Origin: Heterodontus francisci
Taxonomy: Eukaryota
Direction: 5' to 3'
DNA length: 64,000 nt
Assembly (NCBI RefSeq): GCF_036365525.1
Contig: NC_090404.1
Span: forward strand, 3,472,001 to 3,536,000
Positions 8,244 to 62,170 of the stretch are shown one piece after another. The translations under genes and the position numbers were made by a program. The notes below the pieces were generated by a model. It worked only from the letters and a program-made list of their open reading frames with translations, did not search any database and was not told the DNA's origin. Each line of letters begins with the position of its first letter. Positions within the stretch are counted from its first letter, which is position 1.

Positions 8244-8313
8244 ATGCATGGCCGAGTAACTGGTGCAGTGTATGCCATTTACTACCCAATTCTTGCTGCC
8301 ATTGGAGTTCCAG
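8244..8313 (+). CDS. Orphan class A GPCR (GPR139/GPR142-like) gene 1, coding exon 1
   Basis: ATG at 8244 encodes MHGRVTGAVYAIYYPILAAIGVP, then phase-1 donor G|GTGAGT; splices in frame to 15360 to give GVP-VNL (TM1 with conserved Asn). Confidence 0.88.
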
Positions 8314-8861
8314 GTGAGTCATTGCACGAAATAATTAATTGTGTTCATTACTATTTTATGAATTTACTGCTGACACTGACATTAGCAACGAGACACATTC
8401 ATTTCCAGGTGTTTGTTATAAAGTCGCTTGGTCGGGTTTACTAAGTTTCTATTATTTTAATAGCTATTTTGTTTTATGCACGCTGCAATCATTGAGTCTT
8501 GGACACATGCAATATAATGCCGCAACTACTTGTCACTGGCCTTGTGCCAGGCTGATAATATCCTTTGAGTGATTAAAAAAACATCGTGTTTTGTTGACTT
8601 TAAAGAAAACATATAGTTCATCAGGATAATTCTGCAGGTAGCAAATTTGAGAACACATTTCCAACAATAACATCTAACTTTAACTTTCCGTGTTAGTCTC
8701 AATTGGGCAATAGCAAGGAGGCAGCCCGTTTGAATCTCGCTTGAATTATGTTTCCATTGATTTCAGTAGAGATTCAGGAGAGATGTTAAATAAGCTGTAG
8801 ATTCACTATCAACCGTTTCACACTTTCACTCAAAGTCAAGATTTGTCCGATGGAAACGGTG

Positions 8862-9017
8862 AGGGGTGAAATTGATCTTGACCAGTAAAGCAAATCGGTG
8901 GCCAGTTCAACACTTCATCCAGTTCTGCACCCCTGTCCCATATCAGAGAGGTAGAAAACCGGACCGCGAGTAAAACAGGCGGCCCCTTCGCCCCAGCCCA
9001 AAACCAATTTCACCCCT
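8862..9017. mobile_element. Short MITE, probably PIF/Harbinger-like
   Basis: Inverted repeat AGGGGTGAAATTG (8862-8874) / CAATTTCACCCCT (9005-9017); TGA/TTA flanks; related ends near 11230 and 16340. Confidence 0.55.
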
Positions 9018-9505
9018 TATTTCCCCGGATTATCAATCCAGGCCGACTAAATGACTAGTCCAGTGACATAACAGCAATGCTACAGTTCCCTTTCTCATTA
9101 CACTCTTCCATTATTATTTCCCATTCTGCGCTAAAATTGGCCTTTAATTTGGATCGTTATAAATTTGCTGATGGAAACGATGATTGTGTTTATCATGATA
9201 GACATGAAGCTATAAACTAAATACTGACAAATTTTGTAAATGAATGTGGAGATCTGAGCAAAAGAATCACAGGTGTTGCGTGTTTTTAAAAGTGGCTGTT
9301 AAATCTATATACTAGCTCAATCTTCACGTTTACCGAGTAAGTAAGCATAAGTTATTCTGCTTAAGTTGTAGAATAATTATTAATTGAGTGAGTCATTTCA
9401 CTATGAAATCTAGTAAATAGCTTACCTGCTAGAGAGTACCTTGCTAAGGTGTCGCTGGGTTTTTCTTTGGGTGGTGAATGGCGTTTCTACGCTCTGTTCT
9501 GAGAG

Positions 9506-9852
9506 GGGCAGCACAGTGGCACAGTGGTTAGCACCGCAGCTCCAGCGACCCAGGTTCAATTCTGGGTACTGCCTGTGTGGAGTTTGCAAGTTCTCCCTGT
9601 GTCTGCGTGGGTTTCCCCCGGGTGCTCCAGTTTCCTCCCACAGCCAAAAGACTTGCAGGTTGATAGGTAAATTAGCCATTATAAATTGCCCCTAGTATAG
9701 GTAGGTGGAAGGGGAATATAGGGACAGGTGAGGATGTGGTAGGAATATGGGATTAGTGTAGGATTAGTATAAATGGGTGGTTAATGGATGGCACAGACTC
9801 GGTGGGCCGAAGGACCTGTTTCAGTGCTGTATCTCTAAAACTAAAACTAAAA
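9506..9852 (+). mobile_element. tRNA-derived V-SINE (HE1-like)
   Basis: A box TGGCACAGTGG, B box GGTTCAATTC, V-core GTGTGGAGTTTGCA...TCTGCGTGGGTTTC...TTTCCTCCCA, CR1-like 3' end, (CTAAAA)n tail. Confidence 0.9.
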
Positions 9853-10027
9853 CAGTGGTTAATGAGGGAGCAGGATAGGAGAGAGGAAATGTTGTTAGTT
9901 TGTTCAACACATTACAAAACCCCAAAATATAACCAAGGTGAATCGGGTTTGAAAGTAATATCATTGAGGCTGAATATCGTGAGATTCGAATTGCACATGG
10001 ACCTGTGATGGGAATCATGTTATGTTG

Positions 10028-10410
10028 TGGGGGCAGAAACGTAATGGTTATGTTACTGAACTATTGATCCAGAAACATGTGTTCATCTCTCACCATGGCG
10101 GCTGGGAAATTTAAATTTTATTAATTAATAAATCTGGAATAAAAGGTTAGTCTCAGTAATACTAGTTGTCATAAAATCCAGCTGGTTCACTCGTGTCCTT
10201 TAAAGGATGAAATCGGCCGTCCTTACCTGGTCTGACCTACATGTGACTCCAGACCCGCAACAACGTGGCCGACTCTTAACCGCCAGCTGAAATGACCTAG
10301 GAAGTATTCAGTTGTTAAGAAGGTGGCTGAACACCACCCTCTCAAGGGCAACTAGGGATGGAGAATATATGCTGGCCCGGCCAACCAAGCCCATATCCGG
10401 TTAATAAAAG
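10028..10410 (+). mobile_element. tRNA-headed Deu-type SINE (SacSINE1-like), degraded
   Basis: Core CCTTACCTGGTCTGACCTACATGTGACTCCAGAC shared with 13835-14212; 3' end matches the L2-like LINE 3' end. Confidence 0.75.
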
Positions 10411-14650: not shown

Positions 14651-14659
14651 ACAGAACTA

Positions 14660-15359: not shown

Positions 15360-16267
15360 TTAACTTAGTGGCGATTGCGATCCTGTCCCGGGGAAGGTGC
15401 GGTCTCTCCGGATGTATCACTCTGTACCTGGTGTCCATGGCGGTGACGGATCTCCTGGTCGTTATCACTGCAGTGATATTCAATCGGATTACAGGCATTT
15501 ATTTTCCAGTTAGTTTTATGTCCCTGACTCCGGCCTGTACTCTCAGTACCGTGATAATCTACGCAGCCACGGAGAGCTCAGTCTGGTTAACCGTCGCTTT
15601 CACCTTCGATCGATTTATAGCCATTTGTTGCCAGAAGCTGAAAACAAATTATTGCACCGAGAGAACGGCGTCAGTGGTTATAGGTATGGTCGGTTTTTTG
15701 AGCTGTTTAAAAAGCGTTCCTTGGTACTTTATTTACGAACCTCTGTATATAATTAACAATGTGCCATGGTTTTGTAATATAAAATCCAGCTTCTATACTT
15801 CACTCGCATGGACAGCCTATGACTGGTTTGCACGTGTTTTAAATCCCGGCCTCCCTTTCTTCCTGATTCTGTTGCTCAATGCCTTGACCGTCAGACACAT
15901 CCTAGTGGCCAGTAGAGGTCGCAGGAGACTCCGGGCTCACAGCAACGGAGAGAATCAGAGTGACCCAGAGTTAGAGAACCGGAGAAAGTCCATCGTTTTA
16001 CTCTTCGCCATCTCTGGAAGTTTCGTCCTGTTGTGGATGACGTATGTTGTAGATTTCCTGTATGTGAAAATCACAAACGAATCTTATTTCGGAGGTTCCA
16101 ATTTCAATGACCCAAAATTTATTCTCCAAGAGAGTGGAAACATGCTTCAGCTCATGAGCTGTTGCACCAACACGTGTATCTATGCAGTGACCCAGAGAAA
16201 ATTCAGAGAGGAGTTGAAGAATGCGGCAAAATATCTTGGGAATCGAATTGTTAAGTTCGTATACTAG
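15360..16267 (+). CDS. Orphan class A GPCR (GPR139/GPR142-like) gene 1, coding exon 2; spliced protein 325 aa, intact
   Basis: Acceptor TTGTTCTTCTTCTCAG|TT; TM2 YLVSMAVTDLL, TM3 FTFDRFIAIC, ECL2 WFC, TM5 LPFFLILLLNALT, TM6 FVLLW, TM7 CCTNTCIY, helix 8 KFREEL. Confidence 0.93.
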
Positions 16268-22911: not shown

Positions 22912-25900
22912 CATAGAGTCATAGAGTCATAGAGTCGTGCAGCATAGAAACAGGCCCTTCGGCCCACCGCGTCCATGCCGACCATAATGCCTATCAAAAC
23001 TAATACCACCTGCCTGCATTAATTCCATATACCTCTATGCCTTGCTCATTCATGTACCTGTCCAGATGTCCCTTAAATGTCGCTACTGTTCCTGCCTCTA
23101 CCAGCTCATTCCAGATAACCACTATACTTTGTGTGAAAAATTTACCCCTTTGATCCCCTTTAAACCTTCTCCCTCTCAACTTAAATCTGTGCCCTCTACT
23201 TTTAGTCACCCCTACCATGTGAAACAGACTCTGGCTATCTACCCTATCTATGCCTCTCATAATTTTATATACCTCTATCATGTCCCCTCTCAGCCTCCTT
23301 CGCTCCAGGAGAAACAGACCAAGCGTATCCAATCTCTCTTTCTTACTCAAGCCCTCCAAACCAGGCAACATCTTTGTGAATCTTTTCTGCACCCTCTCTA
23401 GCTTAATCACATCTGTCCTGTAGTGCGGTGACTAGAACTGCACACAGTATTCCAAATACGGCCTAACCAACGTTATGTACAACTGTAACATGACGTCGCA
23501 ACTCTTGTACTCAATGCCTCAGCCGATGAAGACAAGCATGCCATACGCCTTCTTCACCACCCTGTCTACCTGTGTTGCCACTTTCAGGGAACTATGTACC
23601 TGCACCACAAGGTCTCGCTGCTCAAGAACACTCCCCAGGGCCCTGCCATTCACTGTCTATGTCCTGCCCCGGTTTAACTTCCCAAAATGCATCACTTCAC
23701 ACTTGTCTGCGTTCAATTCCATTGCCACTCCCTTGCCCACTTTCCCAGTTGATCTATATCCTGTCGTAACCTTAGACAACCTTCTTCACTGTCCACTATG
23801 CCACCAATTTTGGTGTCATCTGCAAACTTACTAATCGTGCCCTCTACATTCACATCCAAGTCACTAATATATATGACAAACAACAGAGTGCCCAGCACCG
23901 ATCCCTGCAGCAAACCACTGGTCACCTGCCTCCAATCTGAAAAGCAGTCCTCCAATACCACCCTCTGCCTCCTATCACCAAGCTAACTTTGTATCCAATT
24001 TGCTAGCTCACCCTGGACCCCATGTATTCGAACCTTCTGGACCAGCCTACCATGCGGGACCTTGTCAAAGGCCTTGCTAAAGTCCATGTAGACAACGTCC
24101 ATCTCCCTGCCCTCGTCAATCCTCTTGGTCACTTCCTCGGAAAACTCAATCAAATTCGTAAGACATGATTTCACACGCACAAAGCCATGCTAACTATATC
24201 TAATCAGACCATGCCTTTCCAGATGCCTATAAATCCTGTCTCTCAGAATCCCTTCCAATGACTTTCCCACCACTGATGTAAGGTGCACCGGCCTCTGGTT
24301 CCCTGGCTTCTCCCTGCTGCCCTTCTTAAATAAAGGCATAACATTAGCTATCCTCCAGTCTTCCGGTACCTCACCTGTGGCTAATGATGATGCAAGAATC
24401 TCTGTCAGGGCCCCAGCAATCGCCTCCCTTGCTTTCCATAGCATCTGAGGATACACCTGCTCAGGCCCTGCGGATTTACCCAGCTTAATGCGCTTCAAAA
24501 CCTCCAACACCTCCTCCTTTGCAATGTTGATATGCTCCAGGATATTGGTGCTCCCTCCTTTGAACTCACGAGCTTCCATGACCTTCTCCATGGTAAATAC
24601 GGACGAGAAAAATTCATTTAAGACCTGGTCAATTTCCCGTGGCTCCACACATAAATTGCCACATTGATCCTTAAGGGGACCTACTCTTTCCCTAGCTACC
24701 CTTTTACTCTTAATATGCTTAGAGAATCTTTTAGGATCCTCCTTTATCTTATCTGCCATGGAAATCTCATGGCCCCTTTTCACCCACCTAATTTCCTTTT
24801 CAAGTGTAGTCCTACATCCCCTATACTCCTCGAGGGACTCACTCGATCCCAGCTGCCTATACCTGACATATACCTCCTTCTTTGTCCTGACCAGATCCTC
24901 ACTATCCCTCGTCAACCAAGGTTCCCTAAACTTGCCAGCCTTGCCCTTCCATCTAAGAGGAACTTTCCGGCCCTGAACTCTTCCTATCTCACTTTTGAAA
25001 GCCTCCCACTTGCCAGACGTCCCTTTACCTCTGCCATTCAACTTTTGAGAATTCCTGTCTGATGTCATAGAAATTAGCCTTCCCCCAATTTAGGACTTCA
25101 ACCTGATGATTAGTCCTATCCTTTTCCATAACTATCTTGAAGCTAATAGAGTTATGGTCACTGGTCCCAAAGTGCTCCCCCACTGACTCATCAACCAACT
25201 GCCCATCCTCATTTAGTTTAGTTTAGTTTAGAGATACAGAAGTGAAACAGGCCCTTCGGCCCACCGAGTCTGTGCCGACCATGAACCACCCATTTATACT
25301 AATCCTACACGAATCCCATATTCCAATAACATCCCCACCGGTCCCTATATATTTCCCTACCACCTACCTATACTAGGGGCAATTTATAATGCCCAATTAA
25401 CCTATCAACCTGCAAGTCTTTGGCATGTGGGAGGAAACCGGAGCACCCGGAGGAAACCCAAGCAGACACAGGGAGAACTTGCAAACTCCGCACAGGCAGT
25501 ACCCAGAATCGAACCCGGGTCCCTGGAGCTGTGAGGCTGCAGTGCTAACCACTGCGTCCCTGTGCCGCCTCCTAAGAGGAGGTCGAGTGTAGCCCCTTCT
25601 CTAGTCGAGCCTTCCACATACTGCTTCAGAATACTATCCTGGACACACTTAACAAGTTCTTCCCCATCTGATCCCTTAGCACTAAGGCAGTCCCAGTCAA
25701 TATTAGGGAAGTTAAAATCACCTACTATTACAACCCTATAATTCCTACAGCTATCGGTGATTTCCCTACATATATGCTCCTCCATTTCCCTCTGACTACT
25801 GGGGGGGACTATAGTATAATCCCATCAAAGTGATTACCCCTTTCTTATTTCTAAGATCTACCCATATGGCCTCGCTGAACATTCTCCCCGCGATATCCTC

Positions 25901-27630: not shown

Positions 27631-27659
27631 TTGCAACTCAAGACTAAATGCATGATAAA

Positions 27660-31229: not shown

Positions 31230-31268
31230 GCTTGTTGTATGGGTTTCTCGTGGTCTGGTAACATTGTG
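31230..31268 (-). promoter_or_regulatory. 23-RSS of V pseudogene
   Basis: Minus strand CACAATG + 23 nt (TTACCAGACCACGAGAAACCCAT) + ACAACAAGC. Confidence 0.75.
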
Positions 31269-31533
31269 TGTCCGAGAACATGCTTTCAGTAGTGCTTCCC
31301 AAAGGCAGTTAGAGTAGTCAGGAGCTCTTTGTTTTTGCAGTAGATATTGCGGGTTCTCTTCTGGGCGGTGAATTTACCAGAAATAAAAGGATGAGGATGT
31401 GATGCCGAATAATTACAGTTTAAAGACACACTGCCCCAGTCTCTCACCAGGACGCCAGTAGGTCCTAAAACACGGATCCCATTTTCTCACTGGACTGAAT
31501 AAGGAGCATAAATATTGGAGTCAAAGGCAGCAT
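31269..31533 (-). pseudogene. TCR alpha/delta-type V pseudogene (not in the ORF track as a V)
   Basis: Pieced translation MLPLTPIFMLLIQSSEKMGSVF*/GPTGVLVRDWGSVSLNCNYSAS/SSFYFW*IHRPEENPQYLLQKQRAPDYSN...GKHY*; frameshifts, stops and FR3 deletion; TATAAA at 31571-31576; followed by a 23-RSS. Confidence 0.75.
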
Positions 31534-35016: not shown

Positions 35017-35275
35017 ACCATAGAAGCATAGAAAACTTACAGCACAGAAGGAGACCATTCGGCCCATCGTGCCGGCGCCGGCCGAAAAACTAGCCCCCCA
35101 ATCTAATTTCACCTTCCAGCACCTGGGCCATAGCCTTGCCAGTTACTGCACTTCAGGTGCATGTCCAGGTATGTTTTAAAAGAATTGAGCATTTCTGCCT
35201 CCACCACTGTTCCTGGCAGTAAATTCCAGACACCCACCACCCTCTGGATGAAAACGTTTGCCCTCATCACAGAAT
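35017..35275 (-). mobile_element. CR1 3' end fragment
   Basis: FIQRVVGVWNLLP and CTATG-type tail. Confidence 0.8.
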
Positions 35276-35276
35276 C

Positions 35277-38200: not shown

Positions 38201-39480
38201 TCTGACTTGTTTGCTTTCCTGTGTTTAGCTGTGTCCCTATACTGCTAGGAGTCTGTTCCCCTCCCCCTGCCAAATTAGTTTAAACTCCTCCCAAGAGCAC
38301 TAGCAAACCCACCAGCAAGGATGTTAGTCCCCCTCTGGTTCAGATGAAGACCGTCCCTCTTGTACAGATCCCACCTTCCCCAGAAATGGTCCCAGTGGTC
38401 CAGGAATCTAAAACCCTCCCTCCTGCACCAATTCTTAAGCCACGCATTCATTCTCCTATTTCTATACACGCTAGCACGTGGCACTGGGAGTAATCCAGAG
38501 ATTACAACCCGAGAGTTGCTGCTTTTTAGTCTGATGCATAACTCCCTGAATTCTTGATGCAAGACCTCATCCCTCTTTCTACCTATGTCATTGATACCAA
38601 CATGTACCCTGACCTCCGCCTTATCACCCTCCCCCTTCAGGATGCCCTGCAGCCGTGCAGTGACATCCCGGACCCTGGCACCAGGGAGGCAACACACCAT
38701 CCTGGAGTCACGTTGACGGCCACAGTAGCGCCTATCTGTTCCCCTGACTATAGAATCCCCTATTACTATTGTTCTTCCTCTCTTTCCCCTTCCTGTGCAG
38801 ACAGGCTGCTTGTGGTGCCCGAAGCTTGGCTCTGTTCACTCCTGGGAGGAACCAGCCTCATCAGCCTCCAAAATGGAATACCAATTTGCAAGCGGGACAT
38901 CTGGGGACTCCTGAACTACCTGCCTGATTTTCTTGGACTGCCTGGTGGTCACCCATTCCCTTCCTTCCTCAAGTCCCTTCTGCTGCGGTGTGACCACCTC
39001 TCTATACGTGCCATCCACGATGTTCTCAAACTCGCGGATGCTCCACACTGTTTCCAGCCGCCGTTCCAGCTCTGAAACCCGAGCTTCCAGGAGCTGCAGC
39101 TGGACACACTTCCTGCACACATGCTGGTCCCGGGGATTGGAAATGTTCCCAGATTCCCACATGCATCAAGAGGAGCAAACCACGGCGTTAAGCTCTCCTG
39201 CCATGACTAAACCCTTTAAATTTAAAACTTTAGAAGACTATTATAGTAAAAAATAAATCAACTAAGTCCTGCTAAAACAATGACTTACAATTCAATCCAG
39301 CTTGAAAAATACCCACCAGGACTTACTCACCAGTCAGCTGTGCTCTGTGGAAACTCTCAGCTCCCCTCACACTCTTTGAGGCCAGGTAGGAAATGAAAGG
39401 AGCTCCTCGCTCCCTCCTCACTGAACTCCCTCATTCACAAAACTCCTACTTTGGCACTCTAACCCAACCCACGTCAGCTC
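35277..39480 (-). mobile_element. Near full-length CR1 LINE, inactivated
   Basis: ORF1: CRKCVQLQLLE, VHVGINDI, DGLHLN (zinc finger, coiled coil, SGNH esterase); ORF2: YFNARS, GDFN, PGNYRPV, GVPQG, FADD. Confidence 0.92.
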
Positions 39481-40570: not shown

Positions 40571-40901
40571 TTCAAAGACCGTATGAGCTCAGAGACAGAG
40601 TGAGCTCAGATTCACTGTGAGCTCAGAGAGAGTGAGAGTTCAATGTCAATGTGAGCTCAGCAACAGTATGAGCTCAGATACAGTGTGAGCTCAGAGACAG
40701 TGTGAGCTGGTGTCAGTTGGAAACACTGAGTGTGAGCTGCCCTGGGTGGGTTTATCCCAAGAATCAGCCTATTTCGTTACTTCGACAGGATGAAGCCTCT
40801 GATCTGGATCTGAAGCGGGAGTTTGGCACCTTGCTAATTCTGCTGAATAGAAAACCCTGAGTCTTACCCGACTTCCCTGTACAATTCTTTCTGCTGCGAT
40901 A

Positions 40902-41236
40902 ATGCTCCGGATATACAGCGTTTCCTTGCTGTTTTGCACCCTGATCGGCACAGAGGTGACGGGTGAAGATGAGGTGATGCAGTTGCCTCGGCGGGAGATT
41001 GTTACTGAAGCTGGAATCGTCTCCATGAACTGTAGCATTACCGTTCCGTTCAGCGTCCTGCACTGGTACAGACAGCTCCCGAATCAGCCCCTCCAGCATC
41101 TGGTGATGGCCACACGCGGGACCGATGAACACGGGAGGATCACTGCTTCAATTGGGGGAAGGAACCAACTCAGTGCCCTGACTGTGAGAGACGCCCGAGT
41201 GACAGGCACAGCCACCTAACTCTGCGCAATCAGGGC
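40902..41236 (+). pseudogene. TCR alpha-type V pseudogene with apparently intronless leader
   Basis: MLRIYSVSLLFCTLIGTEVTG-EDEVMQ...SMNC...LHWYRQLP...SALTVRD...TAT*LCAIR; TAA at 41217-41219 replaces the Tyr of YxC; similar to V 44447-44728. Confidence 0.85.
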
Positions 41237-41275
41237 CACAGTGTAACGAACAGATGGAGAGTCCGTACAGAAATC
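41237..41275 (+). promoter_or_regulatory. 23-RSS
   Basis: CACAGTG + 23 nt + ACAGAAATC. Confidence 0.9.
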
Positions 41276-41297
41276 TGCATCGAGTGGGAGATCCGCT

Positions 41298-41720
41298 CAT
41301 AGAGTCATAGAGTCCTACAGCATAGAAACAGGCCCTTCGGCCCACTGCGTCCATGCCGCCCATAATGCCTATCTATACTAATCCCACCTGCCTGTATTAA
41401 TTCCATATCCCTCTATGCCTTGCTTATTCAAGTACCTGCCCAGATGCCTCTTAAATGTTGCAACTGTTCCTGCCTCCACCACCTCCTCAGGCAGCTCATT
41501 CCAGATACCCACTATTCTTTGTGTGAAAAATTTGTCCCTTTGATCCCCTTTAAACCTCCTCCCTCTCACCTTAAATCTATGCCCTCTAGTTTTAATCATC
41601 CTTGCCATGGGAAACAGACTCTGGCTATCTACCCTATCTATGCCTCTCATAATTTTATATACCTCTATCATGTCCCCTCTTAGCCTCCTTTGCTCCAGGG
41701 AAAACAGACTCAGCCTATCC
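41298..41720 (-). mobile_element. CR1 3' fragment
   Basis: Near-identical to 22912-23345; EQRRLRGDMIEVYKI. Confidence 0.9.
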
Positions 41721-42467
41721 AATCTTTCCTTATAACTCACAGGGAAGGGCCTCAAAAATAGCACATAGAGAAGAGAGGTAACGAAAACAAGAAATACAGC
41801 GATTTGGAAACAGAGAGAACAGAGAGTGTGAAAAGAAAAATGAGAGCGAGAAAGAGAAAATAATTTACTGAATCGTATAGAGGACAGCAAATAAGGAAAT
41901 AAGGAAAGAAAAATGAAAACAAAACTGAGAAAAGCGAGAGCGAGATGCAAAGTTCAACGGCAAGAGAAAGCCGTAACGAAAATGATTCAGCAATAAAGTG
42001 AAGTACTTTTTCCTTTCAACTGAGTCACATTTTCCTTACTCCTATTTACACAGTTGATTTATTTGGAACACGTCTCTCAGTAGAAGACCGCTGGGATACT
42101 GCCGCATAGATGAACTTACTTTGTCCATTATCCGAACAGTGTAACGTTTCCAGAGTCACCACCAGGAGGCTCCATGGTCACACACTTTTTGCTATTTTTT
42201 TGCTAAAATCTGATTATACTATGGTCGCTGCATATTTATATATCTCTGTCAATTTATTTTTCAGTCGATGAGTCTGGCTGTCTGTCTGTGTGAACATCAT
42301 TTGCCTGTCTGAACATTTATCATATATCTGATTTTCAATCTATCTGTTGAACTGTCGATCTATGTATCTATGTGTCTACCAAACTGCTTGCTGGTTTGTG
42401 TGTCCAATATCTGTCAGTTTGTCTATTTTTCATGTATCTATTTGTTTGCTAATCTATCTCTTGTTCT

Positions 42468-42469
42468 AA

Positions 42470-42513
<44 letters not shown>
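42468..42513. repeat. (TATC)n microsatellite
   Basis: About 11 perfect TATC units. Confidence 0.95.
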
Positions 42514-42612
42514 GCTGCACTTCTCCTTCGGACTACGCACTGATATTGGGTAATGAAGCACTATGATAGCGAGAGTTCACTGTCACAGTCTCTCCCGTGC
42601 TAGAACACCTGC

Positions 42613-42651
42613 AGTTTAAGTATAGGCTCTTGACCTACATACACCACTGTG
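42613..42651 (-). promoter_or_regulatory. 23-RSS
   Basis: Minus strand CACAGTG + 23 nt (GTGTATGTAGGTCAAGAGCCTAT) + ACTTAAACT. Confidence 0.88.
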
Positions 42652-42950
42652 CGGTGTTAAGACACAGAAGTATTTCCTGGAATCCCCAGCTGTCACCTCT
42701 GAAACCGTTAAACTGATGGCTCTGTATGTTTTGGCCAGAGATGAGATGAAGCGGCGTCTGGCAAATTTGGCGCTGTCACTGAACCCGTCAGTACAGCGAA
42801 TGAGAATATACTCCGGGGCCACGGACAGACCGTCCCGGTACCAGTACAAGCAAGCGCTAGCCACCTCTGTATAGGAACAGGTGATAGTCGCGATGTCTCC
42901 CTCCTGAACGGTCACCTCTGTCTTTGGTTGGTGAGTGATCAATTCTGGAG
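42652..42950 (-). CDS. TCR alpha/delta-type V exon, open frame, two non-canonical cysteines, leader uncertain
   Basis: Acceptor poly-T...TCCTTTAG|CT; PELITHQPKTEVTVQEGDIATITCSY...ACLYWYR...PEYILIRC...RF...SLTVSEVTAGDSRKYFCVLTP; canonical C, W and C; 23-RSS follows. Confidence 0.88.
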
Positions 42951-43069
42951 CTAAAGGACAGAATAGAAAAAAAAAACATGAGATAAAGTGCAGATACCAT
43001 GAATCATAAACACCAACAGGCAGGGAGACAATCACTAAGATTACCATCGTTTGTTAGCATTTTCTTAAT

Positions 43070-44100
43070 TGTTTATGGGGATGTGGGCAAGTCTGGTATT
43101 TATTTCCCATTGCTATTTCCCTTCGATAAGGGTCTTGAACCACTGCAGTCCAGTGTGGTCAAGGTATTCCTGCAGTATCGTTCAGAAGGAAGTTCCAGGA
43201 TTTTGACCCAACAGCAGTGAAGCAATGGCAATACATCTCCAAGTTGGGATGGCGTGTGACCTGGAGGAGCAGTTGGAAATGGTTATGTTCCCATGTGTCT
43301 GCCGCCTTTGCTCTTCTAGGTAGGAGAGGACGCGGGATTGGGAGGTGCTGGTAAAGAAGACTTGGCGAGATGTCGCAGTGTATCCTGGAAATAGTAAACA
43401 CTTCAGCCACGCTGGACCGGTGGTGAAGGCACTGGATGTTTAACATCAAAAATAGTATCAGGAGTAGGCCATAGAGCCCATCGAGCCTGCTCCACAATTC
43501 AAAATGTCCGAGGCTGATCAGATCTTCGTTTATCTCCAGTTTCCTGCCTTTTCTCCATAACGCTTGACTTACCTATAGTTTAATAATCTATCCTAGTGCT
43601 GACTGCATCCAATGGCTCAAGCTCTACTGCTCTCTGGCGTAAGAGTTCCCAAGATTCACGAGCCATTGATAGAAGAGGTTTCTCCTCATCGTCGTCTTAA
43701 ATGGGGGAACCCTTATTCTGAAGCTGTGCCTCCCGTTCTAAATTTGCCCACGAGGTGAAACACTCGTTTGAGAGTTGTGCCTTTAATGGCATTATCCAAA
43801 CACACGGATATGACGGGTTTTGATTGTAGAGTAAATCGGGAGAAGCGTTTTCAATTGTCAGAAGCTCTGGTCACCAGAGGACACACACCTCAGATCATTG
43901 GCAAAACAATAAGAGGACGGACCCAACAGAATATTTTCTAAGCCATCCTGCAGTTATGGTTTGGAATGCACTGCCAGAAATGATGGTGGAAGCAAGCTAA
44001 ATGATAACTTTCAAAGGGATCAGGATATATTTTTTATATTGGAAATTTTGGAAGGAATTTGGCCAAAGAGCAGGGAGGGATGCTAATTGGACATCTATTT
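43070..44100. mobile_element. Cluster of degraded LINE 3' fragments (L2-like on -, CR1 on - and +)
   Basis: Family 3' end motifs at 43070-43445, 43450-43760 and 43770-44100. Confidence 0.65.
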
Positions 44101-44407
44101 CAATATTGTTAATACAACAGAAAATACAAGATAAGGGAATGAAATGGGAAATTGAGAAGCTAATAGGCAAACTATCCTTCATTAATGTCCTCATGTTAAG
44201 AGGATATTGGTCACTGTATATAGAAAGAGGATTTGCTCTAGTCGCTATGGGTATGGTCACGGTAATTAATTGCATCAATATCTGTACACTGTGCCTGCAC
44301 ACAGCAACCCGTTCACCGTTCGTGTGTTTTTCAGACAGGACATGCTGTGGTTCTGATATTGCTGGAGTTGAGATGGGTAGGCAGTCGGTATTGCCTTTGA
44401 CTGTCTG

Positions 44408-44446
44408 CATTTTTGTAGTGGCTCCCCACTGGGCTGTAACACAGTG
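44408..44446 (-). promoter_or_regulatory. 23-RSS
   Basis: Minus strand CACTGTG + 23 nt (TTACAGCCCAGTGGGGAGCCACT) + ACAAAAATG. Confidence 0.88.
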
Positions 44447-44728
44447 CGATCACCGCACACAAGTAGATGCCAACATCTGATGCAGCAATGTCTCTAATGG
44501 TCAGAGCGCTGTACTTCTGGGCTCCATGAAGAGTAGCCCAAGTCTTTCCTGCTTTTACAGTGCTGTCCAGTGCAGTCGCGACCAGTTGCAGATGCCGTCC
44601 GGGATAATACCGGTACCACTGAGTGTAGCTGAGCAGGATATTGGTGCTGCAGTTCATTGTAATGGAGGACCCTTCCACAGCAACCAATGTCGGAGGAGAC
44701 TGGGAGATCTCATCTTTGGCCAGGACAT
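44447..44728 (-). CDS. TCR alpha-type V gene, V exon (apparently functional)
   Basis: Acceptor TGTTGCAG|AT; DVLAKDEISQSPPTLVAVEGSSITMNC...QWYRYYPG...SALTIRDIAASDVGIYLCAVI; no stops; RSS follows. Confidence 0.9.
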
Positions 44729-45072
44729 CTGCAACATGTAATCAAATGCATGGGCCAAAGAATGGGAATTGTTAACCGTTCATGCATTTATGTAGTTGGG
44801 ATCACATTGAATTTGACAGCACAGGGACGAGTCATATGCCCCAGCAAGGCAATACTGGTGTTTACCCTCACAAACTATTTTTTCACCCGATCACATTATC
44901 CTTCTATTTCTTTCACTCCTCTTCAAGGCTATTTTCCTCAATAACTCCTTGTGATAGGGAGTTCCATTATCTGAGCAAAGAGGTTTTGACTAAATTCCAT
45001 AATGGATTTATTAGTCACTATCTTATACTTATGATCCAGAGATTTCATTTCCCACTCCTAAAGCTAGTAATG

Positions 45073-45440
45073 ATTTAGATTTAGATTTTTTAGATTTAGA
45101 GATACAGCACTGAAACAGGCCCTTCGGCCCACCGAGTCTGTGCCGATCTTTAACCGACCATTAGTGTATACTAATCCTACACTAATCCCATATTCCTACC
45201 ACATCCTCACCTATCCCTATATTCCACTACCACCTACCTATACTAGGGGCAATTTATAATGGCCAATTTACCTATCAACCTGCAAGTCTTTTGGCTGTGG
45301 GAGGAAACCGGAGCACCCGGAGGAAACCCACGCAGACATAGGGCGAACTTGCAAACTCCACACAGGCAGTACCCATAATTGAACCCGGGTCGCTGGAGCT
45401 GTGAGGCTGCGGTGCTAACCACTGCGCCACTGTGCCGCCC
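45073..45440 (-). mobile_element. HE1-like V-SINE in the V leader intron
   Basis: Full-length reverse-complement copy with A and B boxes and (TCTAAA)n tail. Confidence 0.9.
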
Positions 45441-45588
45441 AAACTTATATATTTTTTAAATCCAACACTTAAATTTGGTCAACCACGAGTAAAATGACTA
45501 AAGGATCTTTCGTCGAAGTCCAATTGTATAAAGAAGTGTACAGAGATGGCCTGAAAGTTAATGTGGGAGAAACTACAGTGTAGCTCAC

Positions 45589-45646
45589 CTGAGAAGATTG
45601 TTGTTAGATGGAAGATAATTAAAGTTATTCGGATCTCCATCTTCAT
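45589..45646 (-). CDS. Leader exon of V 44447-44728
   Basis: MKMEIRITLIIFHLTTIFS + G|GTGAGC phase-1 donor, in frame with the V exon (G+AT=Asp). Confidence 0.85.
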
Positions 45647-45694
45647 GTTCTGCTTAAAGGGGCTCTGACCACGAAGTAAGCAGCAGCACTCACC

Positions 45695-45700
45695 TTTATA
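45695..45700 (-). promoter_or_regulatory. TATA box of V promoter
   Basis: TATAAA about 50 bp upstream of the leader ATG; same arrangement at the 31533 V pseudogene. Confidence 0.55.
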
Positions 45701-46879: not shown

Positions 46880-48300
46880 GTACGTCGCCAGAATATAAAT
46901 AAAGACGTTGTCTAATGAAGTAATAGTTGAGATGGAGCCTAGAATGTTATAAACGTGAAATGGTCTAGTGCTTTATTCGTAGCGGGATGTCTAGCAATAA
47001 CAAAAGCAGTCCTTAGTCTAACATAAACAGACACATATTCTAATGCAGTAATAAGTGAGACTAGGCCTAGCGTAATGCAAACTGAGATATGGTCTAATTG
47101 CAGTAATACCTGAGACAGAACCTAGCGCAATACAAACAGAGATATGGTCTAATGCAGTAATAAGTGAGACAGAACCTAGCGTAATATAAACAGAGATATG
47201 GTCTAATGCAGTAATAACTGAGGCAGGGCCTAGCGTAATATAAATAGAAATATGGTCTAATGCAGTAATAACTGAGACAGAACCTAGCGCAATATAAACA
47301 GAGATATGGTCTAATGCAGTAATAACTGAGGCAGGGCCTAGCGTAATATAAATAGAGATATGGTCTAATGCAGAAATAACTGAGACAGGGCCTAGCGCAA
47401 TACAAACAGAGATATGGTATAATGTAGTAATAACTGAGGCAGGGCCTAGTGTAATATAAATAGAGATATGGTCTAATGCAGTAATAACTGAGGCAGGGCC
47501 TAGTGTAATATAAATAGAGATATGGTCTAATGCAGAAATAACTGAGACAGGGCCTAGCGCAATACAAACAGAGATATGGTCTAATGCAGTAATAACTGAG
47601 ACAGGGCCTCGCATAATATCAACAGAGATATGGTCTAATGCAGTAATAACTGAGGCAGGGCCTAGCGTAATATAAACAGAGATATGGTCTAATACTGTAA
47701 AAACTGAGACAGGGCCTAGCGTAATACAAACAGAGATATGTTATAGTGCAGGAATAGGTGAGGCAGGGCCCAGTGTAATATTAACGGAGACATGGTCTAG
47801 TGCAGTAATAACTGAGTCAGAGCCTAGTTTAGAGATACAGCACTGAAACAGGCCCTTCGGCCCACCGAGTCTGTGCCGACCATCAACCATCCATTTATAA
47901 CTAACCGTACACTAATTCCATATCCCCACCTGTCCCTATATTTCCCTACCACCTACCAATACTAGGAGCAATTGCAAATGGCCAATTTGCCTATCAACCT
48001 AGTGTAATACATATATAAAAAAAGAGTTGGTCAAATGCAATAATAAATGAAACAGGGTTCAGTCAAATACAAAGAGAGACATCGTCGACTGTACCATAAA
48101 CAGAAACGGAGATGAGTGCTGCAATAGCAAAGAAAGAACCTAATTAGCATGAACAGACAGGGGGCCTCGTGCAGTAGTAATGGGACAGGGCCTAGTCCAA
48201 TACAAAGAGCAGCATCGTTTAGTTCAGAAATAATTGGATTTTGTAAAATAAACAGTGATATACCGGAGTGCATTAATAACTGAGACTGATCCACTCGTGA
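46880..48300 (+). repeat. 54-bp minisatellite (homogeneous core about 47040-47825, degenerate flanks)
   Basis: Unit GAGATATGGTCTAATGCAGTAATAACTGAGRCAGGGCCTAGCGYAATAYAAAYA; 18-aa periodicity in the spurious ORFs 47018-47614 and 47094-47567. Confidence 0.95.
47826..48000 (-). mobile_element. 5'-truncated HE1-like SINE inserted in the minisatellite
   Basis: GAGATACAGCACTGAAACAGGCCCTTCGGCCCACCGAGTC... matches the SINE 3' half. Confidence 0.85.
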
Positions 48301-48949: not shown

Positions 48950-51900
48950 CTTGGACCGGAGCGACAGCGGCAGTCGACCGGCTCTCTCTCTGTTCCAGCG
49001 CGCACTGAGTTTCAAAGGAGCAGGAAAAAAAGACTTACAGTGACATCACGGGAAATCTGTAAGCTGATTGGCTGGGTAGGTAACGGCTCATGGTGCCTGT
49101 AAGTAGCTTAAAAAATCAGGGGGGAGAAAGTTCTTCTTTTTCGAAAGTAAAAAGGTTAGTACTACTAAAGAGTGTTTTTTGTTTTTAATTAGTATAATTT
49201 ATTAATAATTACTAGTAATTAGTACTTTATATAAATAGTAAGTAGGGGTTTTTAAGGAATCAAGGTCTGTAGTGTAAATAATCTCAATTTGTTTTGAATA
49301 AACTAAGGGTAAGTCATGGCAAGGCAGCTCGGCAACGTGGAGTGCTCCTGCTGTGCAATTTTGGAAGCCAGGGACACTTCCAGTGCCCAGGGCGAACACG
49401 TGTCCAGGAAGTGTCTCCAGCTGCAGCTACTCGGAATCCACGTTTTGGATCTGCAGTGGTGGCTGGGGACACTGCGGTGCATGCGCGAGGCAGAAATAAC
49501 CGTGGATACCACATACAGGGAGGTGGTGAAGACTGCTCAGGCAGAAAGGGAATGGGCGACCAACAGGCAGAGTAGAAGAACAAGGCAGATAGGTTAGGAA
49601 GCCCCTGGGTCCATCTCCCTCTCTAACAGATGTTCCACTTTGAGTACAGTTGGGGGAGACAGCTTCTCAGGGAAATGTAGCAAGAGCCAAGTCCATGGCA
49701 CCATGGGTGGCTCAGCTTCACAGGAGGGGAGGAAAAAGAGTGGGAGAGCTATTGCGATAGGGTATTCTATTGTAAGGGGTACAGATAGGCTTGGGTCAAG
49801 GATGTCATGGAACAGCTGCAGGACATTCTGGAAGGGGAGGGTGAACAGTCAGAGGTCGTGATTCATATTGGTAACAACGACATAGGTAGAAAGAGGGATG
49901 AGGAGTTCCAACAAGAATTTAGGGAGCTAGGTAGCAGACTAAAGAGCAGGGCCTCAATGGTTGGAATCTCTGGATTACTCTGGGTGCCACATGCTGGTGA
50001 GTATAGGAATAGAAGGATAGAACAGATGAACGCGTGGCTGACAACATGGTGCAGGAGGGAGAGCTTTAGTTTCCTGGATCGCTTAGTCTAGTTCTGGTGA
50101 TGATGGGACCTGCACAAGTTGGAAAGTTTGCACCTGAACCAGAACAGCATCCCTGCTGGGAGGTTTGCTAGTGCTGTTAGTGGGGGGTGGGGTGGCGGGG
50201 GGTTAAACTAATTTGGCAGGGGGATCGGATACAGAGTGGAGGTACAATAGGGGGCGATGCACAGCCAAATATGGAAGAGAAATTAAGCAAGTCTGGCAGG
50301 CAGAGCAAATATAGACCTGTTAAAGGCACAAGTGAATAATGCAAGGCTGGATAGCATTTATTTTAATGCAAGCAATCTTACATGTAAGGCAGATGAATTG
50401 AGGGCGTTGATTAACACATGAGAGTATGATATTATTGTTATCACAGAGACATAGTTGAGGGAGGGGCAGGACCTGCAACTCAATATTCCAGGATATAGAA
50501 TCTTAAGGCGTGACGCGGGATGGGGGAGGCACGGGTATAAAAGAGGAGGTGGCATTGCACTTTTTATCAAGGAGTCAATTACTGTTGTAAGGAGGGATGA
50601 TATCTTAGATGGTTCCTCAAATGAGGCCATATGGGTAGAACGTAAAAACAAAAAGGGGGCAATCACTTGGCCGGGAGTTTGCTACAGGCCTCCAAATAGT
50701 CAGAGAGAGATAAAGCAGCAGATATGTAGGCAAATCTCAGAGAGGTGTAAAATAATGGGGTAATAATAGTAGGGGATTTCAACTTTTAACTGGGCTAGTC
50801 TTAGTGTAAAAGGGGTGGAATTCTTAAAATGCATGGAAGAGATTTTTGAGCCAGTATGTAGAAGGTTCTACAAGAGGAGGGGCAGTACTCGACCTAATCT
50901 GAGGGAATGAAGCCGGACAAGTGGTAGAAGTGTCAATGGGGGAACATTTCGGGGATAGTGACCATAACTCCGTAAGATTTAAGGTAGTTATGGAAAAGGG
51001 CAAAGATGGACCAGAAATAAAGGTACTGAATTGGGGGAAGGCCGATTTCAATATGATAAAACAGGATCTGGCAAAGTGGACTGGGAGCAGCTACTTGTAG
51101 GAAAGTCTACATCAGACCAGTGAAAGTCATTCAAAAAGGAAACAGTGAGAGTTCAGAACCAACATGTCCCCGTAAAGGTGAAGGGTAGGACCAACAAGTC
51201 CAGGGAACCCTGGATGTCAATGGATATACAGGATTGGATAAGGGAAAAAAAGGAGGCTTGTGGCAGATTCAGGGGGCTGAAAACAGCAGAGGCCCTAGAG
51301 GAGTATATAAAGTGTAGGGGGTTACTTTAAAAAGTAATTAGGAGAGCATAGAGGGGACATGAAAAAAACACTAGTGGGCAAGATAAAGGAAAATCCCAAG
51401 GCATTTTATAAGTATATTAAGGGCAAGAGGATAACCAGGGAAAGAGTAGGGCCCATTAGGGACCAAAGTGGCAATCTGTGTGTGGAGCCGAAGGATGTCG
51501 GCGAGATTTTAAATGATTACTTTTCCTCTGTGTTCAATATGGAGAAGGACGATGTAGATGTAGATCAGGGAGGGGAATTGTGATATACTCGAAAAAATTA
51601 GCATTGAAAGGGAGGAGGTATTAGCTGTTTTATCGGGCTTAGAAGTGGATAAATCTCCAGGCCCAAATGAGATGTATCCCAAGTTGTTAACTGAGGCAAG
51701 GTAGGAGATAAAAGAGGCTCTGACACAAATTTTCAAATCCTGTCTGGCCACAGGAAAGATGACAGAGGACTGGAGGACAGCGAATGTGATACCATTATTC
51801 AAGAAGGGTAGAAAGGTTAAATGAGGTAATTACAGAGTGATGAGTCTAACACCAGTCGTAGGGAAATTATTGGAAAAAATTCTGAATGACAGGATTGATC

Positions 51901-53212
51901 TCCACTTGGAGAGGTAGGAATTAATCAAGAATAGTTAGCAAGGCTTTGTCAGGGGAAGATCGTGTCTGACAAACTTGATCGAATTTTATGAGGAGGTGAC
52001 TAGATGTGTAGTTGAGGGTAAGGCAGTTGACGTAGTCTACATGGACTTCAGTAAGGCTTTTGATGAGGTCCCGCATGGGAGATTGGTTAAGAAGGTAAGA
52101 GCCCATGGGATCTAGGGCAATTCGGTAAATTGGATCCAAAATTGGCTTAGTGGCAGGAGGCAGAGGGTGATGGTCGAGGGTTGTTTTTGCAATTGGAAGC
52201 CAGTGACCAGTGGTGTATCGCAGGGATCTGTACTTGGACCCTTGCTGTCTGTAGTGTGCATTAATGATTTGGACGTGAATATAGGAGGTATGATCAGTAA
52301 GTTCGCAGATGACACCAGAATGGGTGGTGTTGTAAATAGTGAGGAGGAAATCCTTAGATTGCAGGACGATATAGATGGTCTGGAAAGATGGGCAGAACAG
52401 TGGCAAATGAAATTTAGTCCTGAGAAGTGTTAGGTGATGCATTTTGAGAGGACGAACAAGGCAAGAGAATACACAATGGATTGTAGGAACCTAGGAAGTA
52501 CAAAGGGTCAGAGGGACCTTGGAGTACTTTCCCATAGATCACTGAAGGGAACAGCACAGGTAGATAAGGTGGTTAGGAATGCATCAGGGATGCTTTCCTT
52601 TATTAGCCAAGGCATAGAATATAAGAGCAGGGACGTTATGATGGAGCTGTATAAAACGCTGGTTAGGCCACAGCTGGAGTTCTGTGTACAGTTCTTGTCG
52701 TCACACTATAGGAAGGATCTGATTGCACTGGAGAGAGTGCAGAGGAGATTCACCATGTTGTAGCCTGGGCTGGAGCATTTCAGCTATGAAGAGAGACTGG
52801 ATAGACTAGGGTTGTTTTCCTTAGAGCAGAGAAGGCTGAGGCGAGACCTGATAGAGGTATACAAAATTATGAGGGGCATAGATAGGGTAGATAGGAAGAA
52901 ACTTTTTCCCGTAGCGGAGGTGTCAATAACCAGGGGGCATAGATTTAAGGTAAGGGGCAGGAGATGGCTAGGGGATTTTTTCACCCAGAGGGTGGTTGGA
53001 ATCTGTAACACACTGCCTGAAGGGGTGGTAAAGGCAGGAACCCTCACAACATTTAAACAGTATTTAGATGAGCGCTTGAAACGTCATAGCATACAAGGCT
53101 ACGGGCCAAGTGCTGGAAAATGAGATTTCAATAAATCGGTGTTTGATGGTCGGCACGTACACGATGGGCCGAAGGGCCTGTTTCTGTGCTGTATAACTCC
53201 ATGACTCTATGA
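48950..53212 (+). mobile_element. Near full-length CR1 LINE, inactivated
   Basis: ORF1 CSCC...RKCLQLQLL, IHIGNNDI; ORF2 GVSQGSVLGP, KFADD, EQRRLRRDL; CTATGAC tail; many stops. Confidence 0.92.
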
Positions 53213-56097: not shown

Positions 56098-56164
56098 ATG
56101 CTTGAAACATTTCACAGTGTCAGGAAAGTATACTACATGATACTTGCTGTTATTGGTGTTCCTG
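56098..56164 (+). CDS. Orphan class A GPCR (GPR139/GPR142-like) gene 2, coding exon 1 (too short for the ORF track)
   Basis: AGAAAATG context as in gene 1; MLETFHSVRKVYYMILAVIGVP + G|GTAAGT phase-1 donor; homologous to gene 1 exon 1 (YY.ILA.IGVP). Confidence 0.88.
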
Positions 56165-58239: not shown

Positions 58240-58460
58240 AATAAAAACTAGAAATGCTGGAAATACTCAGCAGGTCTGGCAGCATCTGTGCAGAGAGAAG
58301 CAGAGTTAACGTTTCAGGTCAGTGACCCTTCTTCAGAACTCTGACCTGAAACGTTAACTCTGCTTCTCTCTGCACAGATGCTGCCAGACCTGTTGAGTAT
58401 TTCTAGTATTTCTTGTTTATATTTTAGATTTCCAGCATCTGTAGTATTTTGCTTTTATTT
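58240..58460. repeat. Long inverted repeat (hairpin) built from a Penelope-like terminal repeat
   Basis: 58271-58322 is the perfect reverse complement of 58341-58392 (52 bp), extending imperfectly to about 80 bp; 18-nt loop. Confidence 0.9.
58304..58340 (-). ncRNA. Minimal type I hammerhead ribozyme motif (Penelope-type)
   Basis: Minus strand AGUU-CUGAAGA-AGGGUCACUGACCU-GAAA-CG-UU-AACU. Confidence 0.6.
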
Positions 58461-59109
58461 AAGTGAGATGCCGCTAAACTCACAGCAGGCGGGATCTTTA
58501 CTGGCGCACAGGAATAGGCGTTGCCCAATCAATTTCCCTGCAGAGTCTCCTGTGGATACATTCCGAGGGCCCTATGTGATATTTGTTAGCTTCGTTCTGT
58601 ACACGCACACCACTCCCGCTGACACTCCTCTTTCCCGCATTGGCTCTGGGCTGCTCAGGCTCCTTGCCTCGCCACTTTCCCAGTACAATGATCAATGTTT
58701 GGTGCCGATTTCCTTCTTTCACACTGAACTGGAAAACAGTGCTTCTAAGTTACGGCCACCCTCGCCTTCACATGCTCATTCGCAGATACTTCCCGTCCCT
58801 TCCTCGAATTCTCTATCTCCATTTCACAGCATAGGCTTTCCACCAACATCTATTGTAAGTCCACCGACTCCCACAGCTCCCTTGACAGCACTTCCTCTGT
58901 CAGATCTCACGTTGTAAAATTGCTATTGTAAATCATTGGAAGAAGCTCACGGCACTACCTTCGGGATTGCTGCTGCAAAGTGAGCCTTTATCATCGACTC
59001 TCCCGAGTGGCACACTGCGATTGCTACACTAAACATGTACAGTGGCTTCCAATGAACAGTACTATACATATCAAATGAACAATATACTATATTCTCCAAC
59101 CCCACTTCC

Positions 59110-60410
59110 TGTCAAGAGTCGGTTCTGTTCTCCCATTTCTCCGAAGCCTTTGCATCTGTTTCCACGATGTCACCTTCCAGACCCATGTTTCCGAAGAGTC
59201 TTTATTCGCTTCAGCTGAGGGTTCACCTCCGCTGTGGTTGTCAGGAGTTTGACCATGTCCGTCCCATTTCCCGCGTTGCTGCCCTCACCACCTCCATGCC
59301 AGAAACTTGACAATGTACCCTTTGCTCTCATCTTCAACAGATCATCCTTCCTCCCATTTCCACCGTGTCAGCCAAACCCACCATCAAACACATCTTCCTC
59401 TCAGCTCCTTTCCCCCATGCCTTGTGGCATACTGGTTCACTCTTCCATCAGCCCCAATATCAGTTCCCTTCCTGCCGGCACTTTCCTATGCAAGCACAGG
59501 AAATGCAACATCTGCCCGTTTCCCTCCTTGCATTCCACCTTCCGGGGTCCCAAGCCCTTTATCAATTTACTTGCACATCTTTCACTTTAGTTACGGCATT
59601 CATTTCACTGCCCTGGAATCAATGTCCGCTACCTTGGAGAAGACTAAACACAAATTGAGTGATTGTTTTGGTAAACACTTCATTTAAGTTCGGGAGCACA
59701 TTCCTGAGCTTCCAGTCGCTGGCTATTATATATCTACATCCCACTCCAGCTGTGGCTTGACTCTCCTCGGCCTGCTGCATTGTTCCACTTCTAAGATTAA
59801 CGTTGAAAAGCACATTATTTGTCGAGCAAGTACTTTATTGCCTGCCGGATTCAGCACTGAGATTAAAAACTTCAGATCACAACAACAGATCCTATTTTAT
59901 CTCAGGATGCTGTCTGCTGGTAAGGGAGGATGGCTACACCAGGGCCACTGGGAGAGGAGAATGTGCGTGCTGGTACTTGGGTCTGGATTCCCTATTGGCA
60001 CACGGCTGACTGGCTGGTCCATTCCCTTGGGTCTACCCACCTTTCTCCACCACATTTCATGACCACTGGAGCCCTCTCCTCTGAACTAGATTTCTTTGGT
60101 CCATTCCACTTTGTTATTCTGCTGTAAGCATTTACACCTCTTCTGGATCCATCTTTACTTGTCCCATTTGCCTTGCACCATCATCCCTTTTGTCATTGAC
60201 TCACTCTTGCACTCCACCCGAACACTAACCTTCTCCTTTGTTCTTTCCTCCCCTTATATCTCACTCTTTACTGGCTCTATCATTGTTTTGAAACTGTTAA
60301 TCTCTACTATCTTCCAGTTTTTATAAAAGGTTATCAGGCTGAAACGTTAACTTTGTTTCTGTCTCCACAGATGCTGTCAGAACTGCTCAGTGTTTTCAGC
60401 ATGATTTTAT
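59110..60410 (+). mobile_element. Penelope-like element remnant (GIY-YIG region and terminal repeat)
   Basis: GTFLCKHRKCNICP zinc motif, frameshifted YLGE/KTKHKLSDCFGKH (YIGETKR-like), terminal repeat at 60315-60410. Confidence 0.7.
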
Positions 60411-61226
60411 TTACAGAGGTCTCAGTTTTTCCATTTTGCCCAAATATTTAGACTAGGATCCTAACGGGGCTGGGTTACACAGATGGTGGTTGGGGATGGC
60501 GGGCGCGGTGGGGGAGTGATGGGGGAGTGGTGTTTTGTTGGGGTCAAAATTTCAAAGACAGGCTTTCCCCCCACACTGTGCAGTTTTTTTTTTGTTTCAC
60601 GGGGTGCGTCTTTCGTCCTTGTCAGGTTCCTTGACAGGAAGTTAACCTGACTGGCAAGTTTGTCATCCAGTTATTGGGCGTGATCCCAGGTAGGTCCCAT
60701 CCTAGACCCCGGAGGATCTGTCCGATCCTGGGTAATCTGATCATGGACATGGGAAAGGTTCCAATCCCCAACAGGAGGGGTCTTTGCCTGAGGGGAGTCC
60801 GATGGGGGCTGAGCTTGGGAGTCCAGGAGGAACCACTCCTGCTAATCTTGGCATACAAGCAAGGGTGTAGTGGGAACTACCGTGTCTCTAAAACTGCTTT
60901 CACCTCTCTTCAGCTGCTGAGTTTCCTGTGGCCTAACAATCCCGGCTGGGCAATGTCAAGCCTTTAAATCAGTTTCAATCAGAGGTTGCCAGTCTCTTAA
61001 AATATTTAACATACCGACCTGGCTCCTGGGAGCGATCAGCTGCTCGCTCCCTGTCCTGTCTCTGTTAACGTGGATGAGTTGGAGTTAGGTTGAGATTCTT
61101 TCATCTCTGACCCAATTCCAACCCACAATGGTTTGGTCCTAAATTCCAGCCCTTACTGCCTGGGCTCAGAATCGGAGAATATTTGATCAGTAAATTCGTG
61201 TCTCTTTTCCCTTCTCCCTCTTACAG

Positions 61227-62170
61227 TTAATTTAGTGGCGATTATGATCCTGTCCCGGAGAAAGTGCGGACTCTCCACCTGCACCACTCGCTACCTGGTG
61301 TCCATGGCAATAGCGGATCTACTGGTCATTATCACTGAGGTCATACTGCTCCGGATCAATTATTATTATTTCCCAGGATCTTTCCTGGACATCACCCCTG
61401 TGTGTACAGTTATGCACGTACTGATTAATGCAGCCACGGACTGTTCTGTCTGGCTCACTGTCACGTTCTCCTTTGATCGATTTGTCGCCATTTGTTGCCA
61501 GAAGCTGAAAACAAGATATTGCACTGAAAAATCGGCAGCTGCTGTTGTGGCAACAACCTGCATTCTGCTCTGTTTAAAAAACATCCCTTACTACTTTACA
61601 TATGAACCTGGAGAGATAATCGACAATGTACCATGGTTCTGTTATGATAAGCCTAGCTATTTTACTGAGCCCGGATGGGTGGGAATGGATTGGTTTGACA
61701 AAGTTTTAACTCCATTGCTTCCATTCCCTTTAATTCTGTTGCTCAATGCTCTGACAGTCAGATACATTTTAGTAGCCAGTCGGGTCCGTAAGGGACTGAG
61801 GGGTCAGAGCAAGGGAGAGAAATGCAGTGACCCAGAGATGGAGAGCAGAAGGAAGTCTGCTATTTTACTCTTCACCATTTCGGGCAGCTTCATACTTCTG
61901 TGGTTGTCATATGTTATAGATTTTTTATATTACAACATTGCAGGTACAGCTCCCAACAATTACAATGCTTCTTTATATATCTTTGGACAAGTCGGATTTA
62001 TGCTGCGGACCTTAAATTGCTGCACGAACACATTTATTTATGGGGTGACACAGTCCAAGTTCAGAGAGCAGTGCAAGAGCATAGTGAAATATCCGGTTAC
62101 ATCAATTATTCAGTTGATCGCTAAACAAAATAACAGAGAGCAACGCAGAGGCGGGTCCCAGTGTTCCTAG
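61227..62170 (+). CDS. Orphan class A GPCR (GPR139/GPR142-like) gene 2, coding exon 2; spliced protein 336 aa, intact
   Basis: Acceptor CTTCTCCCTCTTACAG|TT; YLVSMAIADLL, FSFDRFVAIC, PWFC, LPFPLILLLNALT, FILLW, NCCTNTFIY, KFREQ. Confidence 0.93.

Follow-up and report, generated by a model that had tools for sequence, protein, structure and literature searches.

GPR139-like receptor genes and T cell receptor alpha/delta-type V segments on one stretch of a horn shark chromosome

Genes and V segments in the window

We analyzed a 64,000-nucleotide stretch of the horn shark (Heterodontus francisci) genome (contig NC_090404.1, positions 3,472,001 to 3,536,000; hereafter the window), in which four T cell receptor (TCR) variable (V) segments lie between two intact genes for class-A G protein-coupled receptors (GPCRs), here G1 and G2. 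This arrangement had been reported in a first-pass annotation made from the sequence alone, and all of the features named there are present at the positions given. The window has no N runs and belongs to a chromosome of 59,489,666 bp, and G1 and G2 equal RefSeq H. francisci proteins encoded on that chromosome. Since the gene models are identical to these proteins, the outer limits of the annotated feature, 8244 and 62170, are exact gene boundaries.

Both GPCR genes are on the plus strand and have two coding exons. Exon 1 of G1 (8244-8313) starts with an ATG at 8244, encodes MHGRVTGAVYAIYYPILAAIGVP plus the first base of a Val codon, and is followed by a GT donor at 8314; exon 2 (15360-16267, stop included) follows the acceptor ttcttctcag and runs from the rest of the first transmembrane helix (TM1) to the C-terminus. 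Exon 1 of G2 (56098-56164) encodes MLETFHSVRKVYYMILAVIGVP plus one base and has a GTAAGT donor, and its exon 2 (61227-62170, stop included) follows the acceptor cctcttacag. The long reading frames of both genes start within TM1, right after a polypyrimidine tract and an AG, and the short first exons, each of which ends in GT, were located by a motif search with a splice donor. Database searches were run exon by exon, and the joined models were compared with RefSeq proteins only. The joined G1 model matches XP_067869824.1 (P0121; 325 aa) and the joined G2 model XP_067869825.1 (P0001; 336 aa), residue for residue. Each protein covers the full Pfam 7tm_1 profile. G1 and G2 are 59% identical to each other, and their exon 2 sequences give a dN/dS of 0.27 with dS close to saturation, so both have been kept as coding genes. 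G1 and G2 are thus two-exon class-A GPCR genes under purifying selection and, as the first-pass annotation had it, intact.

The closest solved relative of both receptors is human GPR139 (E 1e-11 for G1 and 1.6e-9 for G2), and for G1 it is the sole solved chain at E ≤ 1e-6. The match amounts to only 46-48 bits, with approximately 25% of the aligned residues identical. Features in common include YY..L...G.P.N in TM1, a DRF/DRY sequence and an NPxxY motif that lacks its proline. One-to-one orthology with GPR139 was rejected on this low score (approximately 47 bits) and identity and on the size of the family: as queries, G1 and G2 each retrieve more than 2000 proteins at E ≤ 1e-10, unlike a conserved single-copy orthologue. 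The best 120 matches per query come nearly all from sharks, skates and rays, and we therefore call the genes GPR139-like rather than GPR139. The great expansion in elasmobranchs bears out the earlier claim of a lineage-expanded family. Membership in the olfactory receptor family was considered and discarded, as the 55 solved chains with a match at E ≤ 1e-3 include no olfactory receptor; the family indeed differs from the one that accompanies the mammalian TCR alpha/delta (TRA/TRD) locus, as had been proposed.

Each of the four V segments is followed directly 3' by a heptamer, a 23-nt spacer and a nonamer (23-nt-spacer recombination signal sequence, 23-RSS), with heptamers matching at 6-7 of 7 positions and nonamers at 6-7 of 9. 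The four 23-RSSs of the first-pass annotation therefore stand, but only V42 and V44 have an open V-set frame with Cys23, Trp41 and Cys104 (Pfam V-set, E 1.5e-10 and 1e-08, respectively). V42 is on the minus strand (exon 42652-42950, RSS 42613-42651, CACAGTG and ACTTAAACT); its frame ends in YFCVLTP and has an extra Cys in complementarity-determining region 1 (CDR1) and another in CDR2. V44, also on the minus strand (exon 44447-44728, RSS 44408-44446, CACTGTG and ACAAAAATG), has a frame that ends in YLCAVI. A leader exon lies further along the same strand (45589-45646), encoding MKMEIRITLIIFHLTTIFS plus one base and ending at a GTGAGC donor.

The other two V segments are pseudogenes. V31 (minus strand, exon 31269-31533, RSS 31230-31268, CACAATG and ACAACAAGC) is decayed: its leader ATG is at 31533, framework region 2 and CDR2 are missing, and there are stops in frame. 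V41 lies on the plus strand, opposite to the other three (exon 40902-41236, RSS 41237-41275, CACAGTG and ACAGAAATC), with leader and V in a single frame that has no intron and a TAA codon where Tyr would precede Cys104. This intronless layout could reflect a processed copy of a germline V transcript, or intron loss. V41 and V42 have convergent orientations, with approximately 1.3 kb between their facing 23-RSSs.

TCR alpha chains dominate the lists of PDB chains matched with phmmer by V41, V42 and V44, and V42 also matches V delta 1. Since a few single-chain variable fragment antibodies score about as well, these segments are assigned to an alpha/delta type in which alpha and delta are not told apart. 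The earlier assignment to TCR alpha/delta thus holds for the three V segments that have a TCR alpha V as best solved match, whereas V31, too decayed for a structure-based match, is assigned from its motifs and RSS alone. The V segments are mutually 25-28% identical. A protein-database search with V44 gave no matches; the likely reason is that annotated protein sets do not contain V segments as entries of such length. An exhaustive protein search returned only distant V-set models (at most 52-53% identity) and no cDNA evidence; the matches are mostly long gene models that chain several immunoglobulin (Ig) domains and are misleadingly named, for example as hemicentin or NCAM2.

Scans of the window for a joining (J) segment (FGxG with a donor), a 12-RSS and a diversity (D)-like double RSS found none, and no C1-set domain or exon of a constant (C) region occurs among its 202 stop-free stretches of at least 75 aa. 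These scans confirm the absence of D, J and C from the window that had been noted at first.

RNA from V42 and a leader exon that fits two V segments

We aligned contigs from four coded, unlabelled sequencing runs to positions 40850-45700. These runs were taken to be RNA because unique intergenic DNA has a depth of zero in them, with depths of 10^4 to 10^6 over parts made of short and long interspersed nuclear elements (SINEs and LINEs). Run X1 contains a 358-nt contig with a depth of 13.6 that matches 42657-42950 without mismatch, and one edge of this match falls exactly at the V42 splice acceptor, where the exon starts. The two bins over V42 have depths of 11.5, which is 13.6 x 137/162, and 13.2, which is 13.6 x 157/162. 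The bin at 45548-45700 has a depth of 5.7, in X1 only, which equals 13.6 x 64/153; from this agreement, we infer that the remaining 64 letters of the contig consist of the leader exon at 45589-45646 and 6 nt of 5' untranslated region. The depth arithmetic thus indicates a V42 transcript in which the leader at 45.6 kb is spliced directly to the V42 exon, skipping V44. The first-pass annotation had given this leader to V44. Its phase (phase 1) fits both V44 and V42, but the RNA joins it to V42, and V44 has zero RNA depth in all four runs.

With the leader spliced to V42, the V44 exon and its RSS lie inside the 2.6-kb leader-V42 intron. It is unusual for one V exon to sit within the leader intron of a second V, and the arrangement is relevant to the sharing of promoters and leaders among V segments. 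The same intron holds a tRNA-type SINE at approximately 45080-45440, over which contig depth reaches 10^5 to 10^6 in all four runs. We also considered whether V42 and V44 could be part of a new antigen receptor TCR (NAR-TCR) unit with a supporting V delta, in which a V exon lacking its own leader receives an upstream NAR-type V-D-J. We rejected this arrangement: there is no J, D or extra V-set frame between V44 and V42, and in the RNA V42 follows a signal-peptide exon.

The V42 contig stops 5 nt short of the heptamer, and depth is zero on the RSS and beyond. An end at this point fits diverse V-(D)J junctions rather than read-through germline transcripts, which would continue into the RSS and its flank. 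This is good but not conclusive evidence, and it suggests that V42 is used in rearranged TCR transcripts. At V41, run X3 has a low-depth contig over roughly 40850-41090.

Spread of the GPR139-like family and repeats in the window

A tree of 137 GPR139-like proteins (best matches only; FastTree, midpoint root) has two deep clades, each with 100% support, and places G1 in one and G2 in the other. G1 and a horn shark twin with 93% identity (P0122) nest within a shark, skate and ray orthologue group (P0121-P0135), which has single copies in Heptranchias, whale shark, catshark, Mustelus, skates and rays at 78-88% identity; catshark P0123, manta P0128 and little skate P0131 are among its members. 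As this group includes sharks, skates and rays, the G1 lineage is older than the shark-ray split. The group is unusually stable for members of a birth-and-death family. Among the best matches, 37 of the 53 horn shark members of the G1 clade are on the chromosome of the window.

The G2 clade (P0001-P0120) has a different distribution. G2 and its own twin (P0002, 91% identity) sit in a clade whose other 72 horn shark members occupy more than 20 other chromosomes or scaffolds. Members of this clade are 75-80% identical across horn shark chromosomes and scaffolds, and their protein lengths fit the same short two-exon gene. G1 and G2 are not local duplicates of each other, since they come from separate deep clades and the G2 clade lies mainly on other chromosomes. 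The twins of both genes are on the window's chromosome: G1, G2 and the twin of G1 carry the consecutive RefSeq accessions XP_067869824, XP_067869825 and XP_067869826, and the twin of G2 is XP_067869869. We found no description of the elasmobranch GPR139-like expansion in the searchable literature.

Among the stop-free stretches, the only Pfam matches are to LINE reverse transcriptase and endonuclease, a GDSL/SGNH esterase that we take to be LINE-borne, 7tm_1 (two) and V-set (two). Comparison of the window with itself brings out numerous LINE and SINE copies, a single 54-bp satellite and the exon 2 pair of G1 and G2. The satellite (47019-47827; 15 copies, 86% match) accounts for spurious long open frames on the minus strand. 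One tRNA-derived SINE has copies at 9420-9850, 25210-25570, 45080-45440 and 63450-63710 that are 83-91% alike. The V41-V44 group is flanked by two inverted LINE copies of approximately 4 kb (35267-39216 and 49305-53212; 70% identity), and fragments related to this pair occur at 22.9-26.9 kb and 39.5-40.5 kb.

Origin of the V and GPCR mixture and its known parallels

The window is probably nothing out of the ordinary for the horn shark antigen-receptor chromosome: live and dead TCR alpha/delta-type V segments sit beside genes from a very large class-A GPCR family of elasmobranchs, with LINE and SINE debris in between. The V segments and the GPCR genes are probably two independent birth-and-death families that share one duplication-prone, repeat-rich region. 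The minus-strand segments V31, V42 and V44 aim their RSSs at lower coordinates. If a J-C cluster lies in that direction, V-J joining would delete G1 on the rearranged allele and keep G2. Such a loss of G1 would need no function, since it follows from the geometry alone, and it would be a by-product of joining.

The first-pass annotation had proposed instead that the GPCR genes co-duplicate with the V segments. This is not visible in the window: the V segments belong to different families at 25-28% identity, the GPCRs are 59% identical, and the self-comparison, whose matches are copies of transposons and the two GPCR exon 2 sequences, found no repeated unit of V plus GPCR. A larger block that holds both GPCR genes and V segments could nevertheless have duplicated as a whole, and the two families would then have expanded in step with no functional link needed. 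The twins of G1 and G2 on the same chromosome have diverged to a similar extent (93% and 91%), and the three consecutive accessions hint at an order G1-G2-G1'; together they suggest that a block of at least 50 kb with V segments and GPCR genes may have duplicated whole. However, accession order is a weak guide to position, and the accession of the G2 twin is more distant. We regard duplication in such blocks as possible, a serious contender that falls short of being the probable account.

Several observations count against two unconnected families. The G1 clade is strongly concentrated on the chromosome of the window. The run of accessions means that larger blocks of V and GPCR genes may duplicate together, in which case the association could be old. 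The RNA evidence consists of one contig in one run. The first-pass annotation allowed that the V segments might form an orphon cluster, that is, relics remote from any D-J-C and never rearranged. The pseudogenes V31 and V41 (two of the four V segments), the window without D, J or C, and the silence of V44 in four runs would all fit that picture. At least V42 is not a dead orphon, given a spliced RNA contig that carries a correctly joined signal-peptide exon, ends 5 nt before the heptamer and leaves the RSS and its flank at zero depth; in addition, both V42 and V44 retain open frames and good RSSs. A cluster consisting entirely of dead orphons is therefore unlikely.

A tie in function between V choice and GPCR expression had also been suggested, either because V(D)J recombination would set a different GPCR complement in each T cell clone, or because locus opening would co-regulate GPCR and V genes. 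What favors this is geometry only: G1 lies on the RSS side of three minus-strand V segments, and deletional joining to lower coordinates would remove it. The deletion would be an automatic by-product of V-J joining, though, and would affect one allele alone. Moreover, the GPCR family is spread over many chromosomes, which argues against a specific tie to TRA/TRD, and the olfactory receptor genes of the mammalian TRA locus are a working counter-example. The claim is unsupported, and we consider such coupling highly improbable. A more far-reaching version would place the G1-type clade in the TCR alpha/delta-Ig heavy chain complex since before the shark-ray split, co-regulated with V(D)J recombination or clonally removed by it, so that T cell clones would differ in an expressed GPCR; we judge this very unlikely. 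Finally, a mis-join in the assembly could have brought a GPCR cluster and a TCR V cluster together, as might be feared in a repeat-rich region. There are no N runs in the window, the RNA contig bridges leader and V42 over 2.6 kb in agreement with the assembly, and both GPCR introns, 5-7 kb in length, yield exact RefSeq models, all of which makes a mis-join barely conceivable. In summary, the first-pass interpretation is supported in part: the identity of the V segments, the GPCR family, the RNA from V42 and the concentration of the G1 clade on this chromosome speak for it, but co-duplication and functional coupling do not follow from the data. The preferred account remains that of two independent families in a common region.

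Parts of this picture are already known. G1 and G2 are in RefSeq, GPCR genes have been described among mammalian TRAV genes, and the mixing of V and Ig genes in elasmobranchs is published. New are the identity of the GPCR family and the leader that fits two V exons, one of them nested in the leader intron of the other. These two by-products of the analysis, the huge elasmobranch GPR139-like family and the nested V, are possibly of greater weight than the mixture itself.

Flajnik et al. 2025 (PMC12227049) found TCR alpha/delta linked to the IgM, IgW and IgNAR clusters of elasmobranchs, and TCR-type V exons interspersed among these clusters. The window resembles this antigen-receptor complex in having TCR alpha/delta-type V exons with no D, J or C beside them. 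GPCR genes are not mentioned in that report, in contrast, and the horn shark is not among the species analyzed there. The closer parallel for the GPCR genes is found in mammals, where olfactory receptor genes lie among TRAV genes at the 5' end of the TRA/TRD locus. In humans, OR10G2 and OR4E2 are located between TRAV1-1, TRAV1-2 and TRAV2, and in the mouse Olfr1507-1509 are located between TRAV1 and TRAV2; in both species, V-J joining from distal TRAV genes removes the intervening olfactory receptor genes (PMC4574546). In both settings, class-A GPCR genes from a birth-and-death family lie intact between RSS-bearing alpha/delta V segments. The shark genes differ in that they belong to a family other than the olfactory receptors, with GPR139 as nearest relative, and in that they have two coding exons. 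The mixing of GPCR genes and TCR V segments known from mammalian olfactory receptors is thus found in a shark too, with a different GPCR family, which fits the view that antigen-receptor V arrays sit in duplication-prone regions that gather other birth-and-death families.

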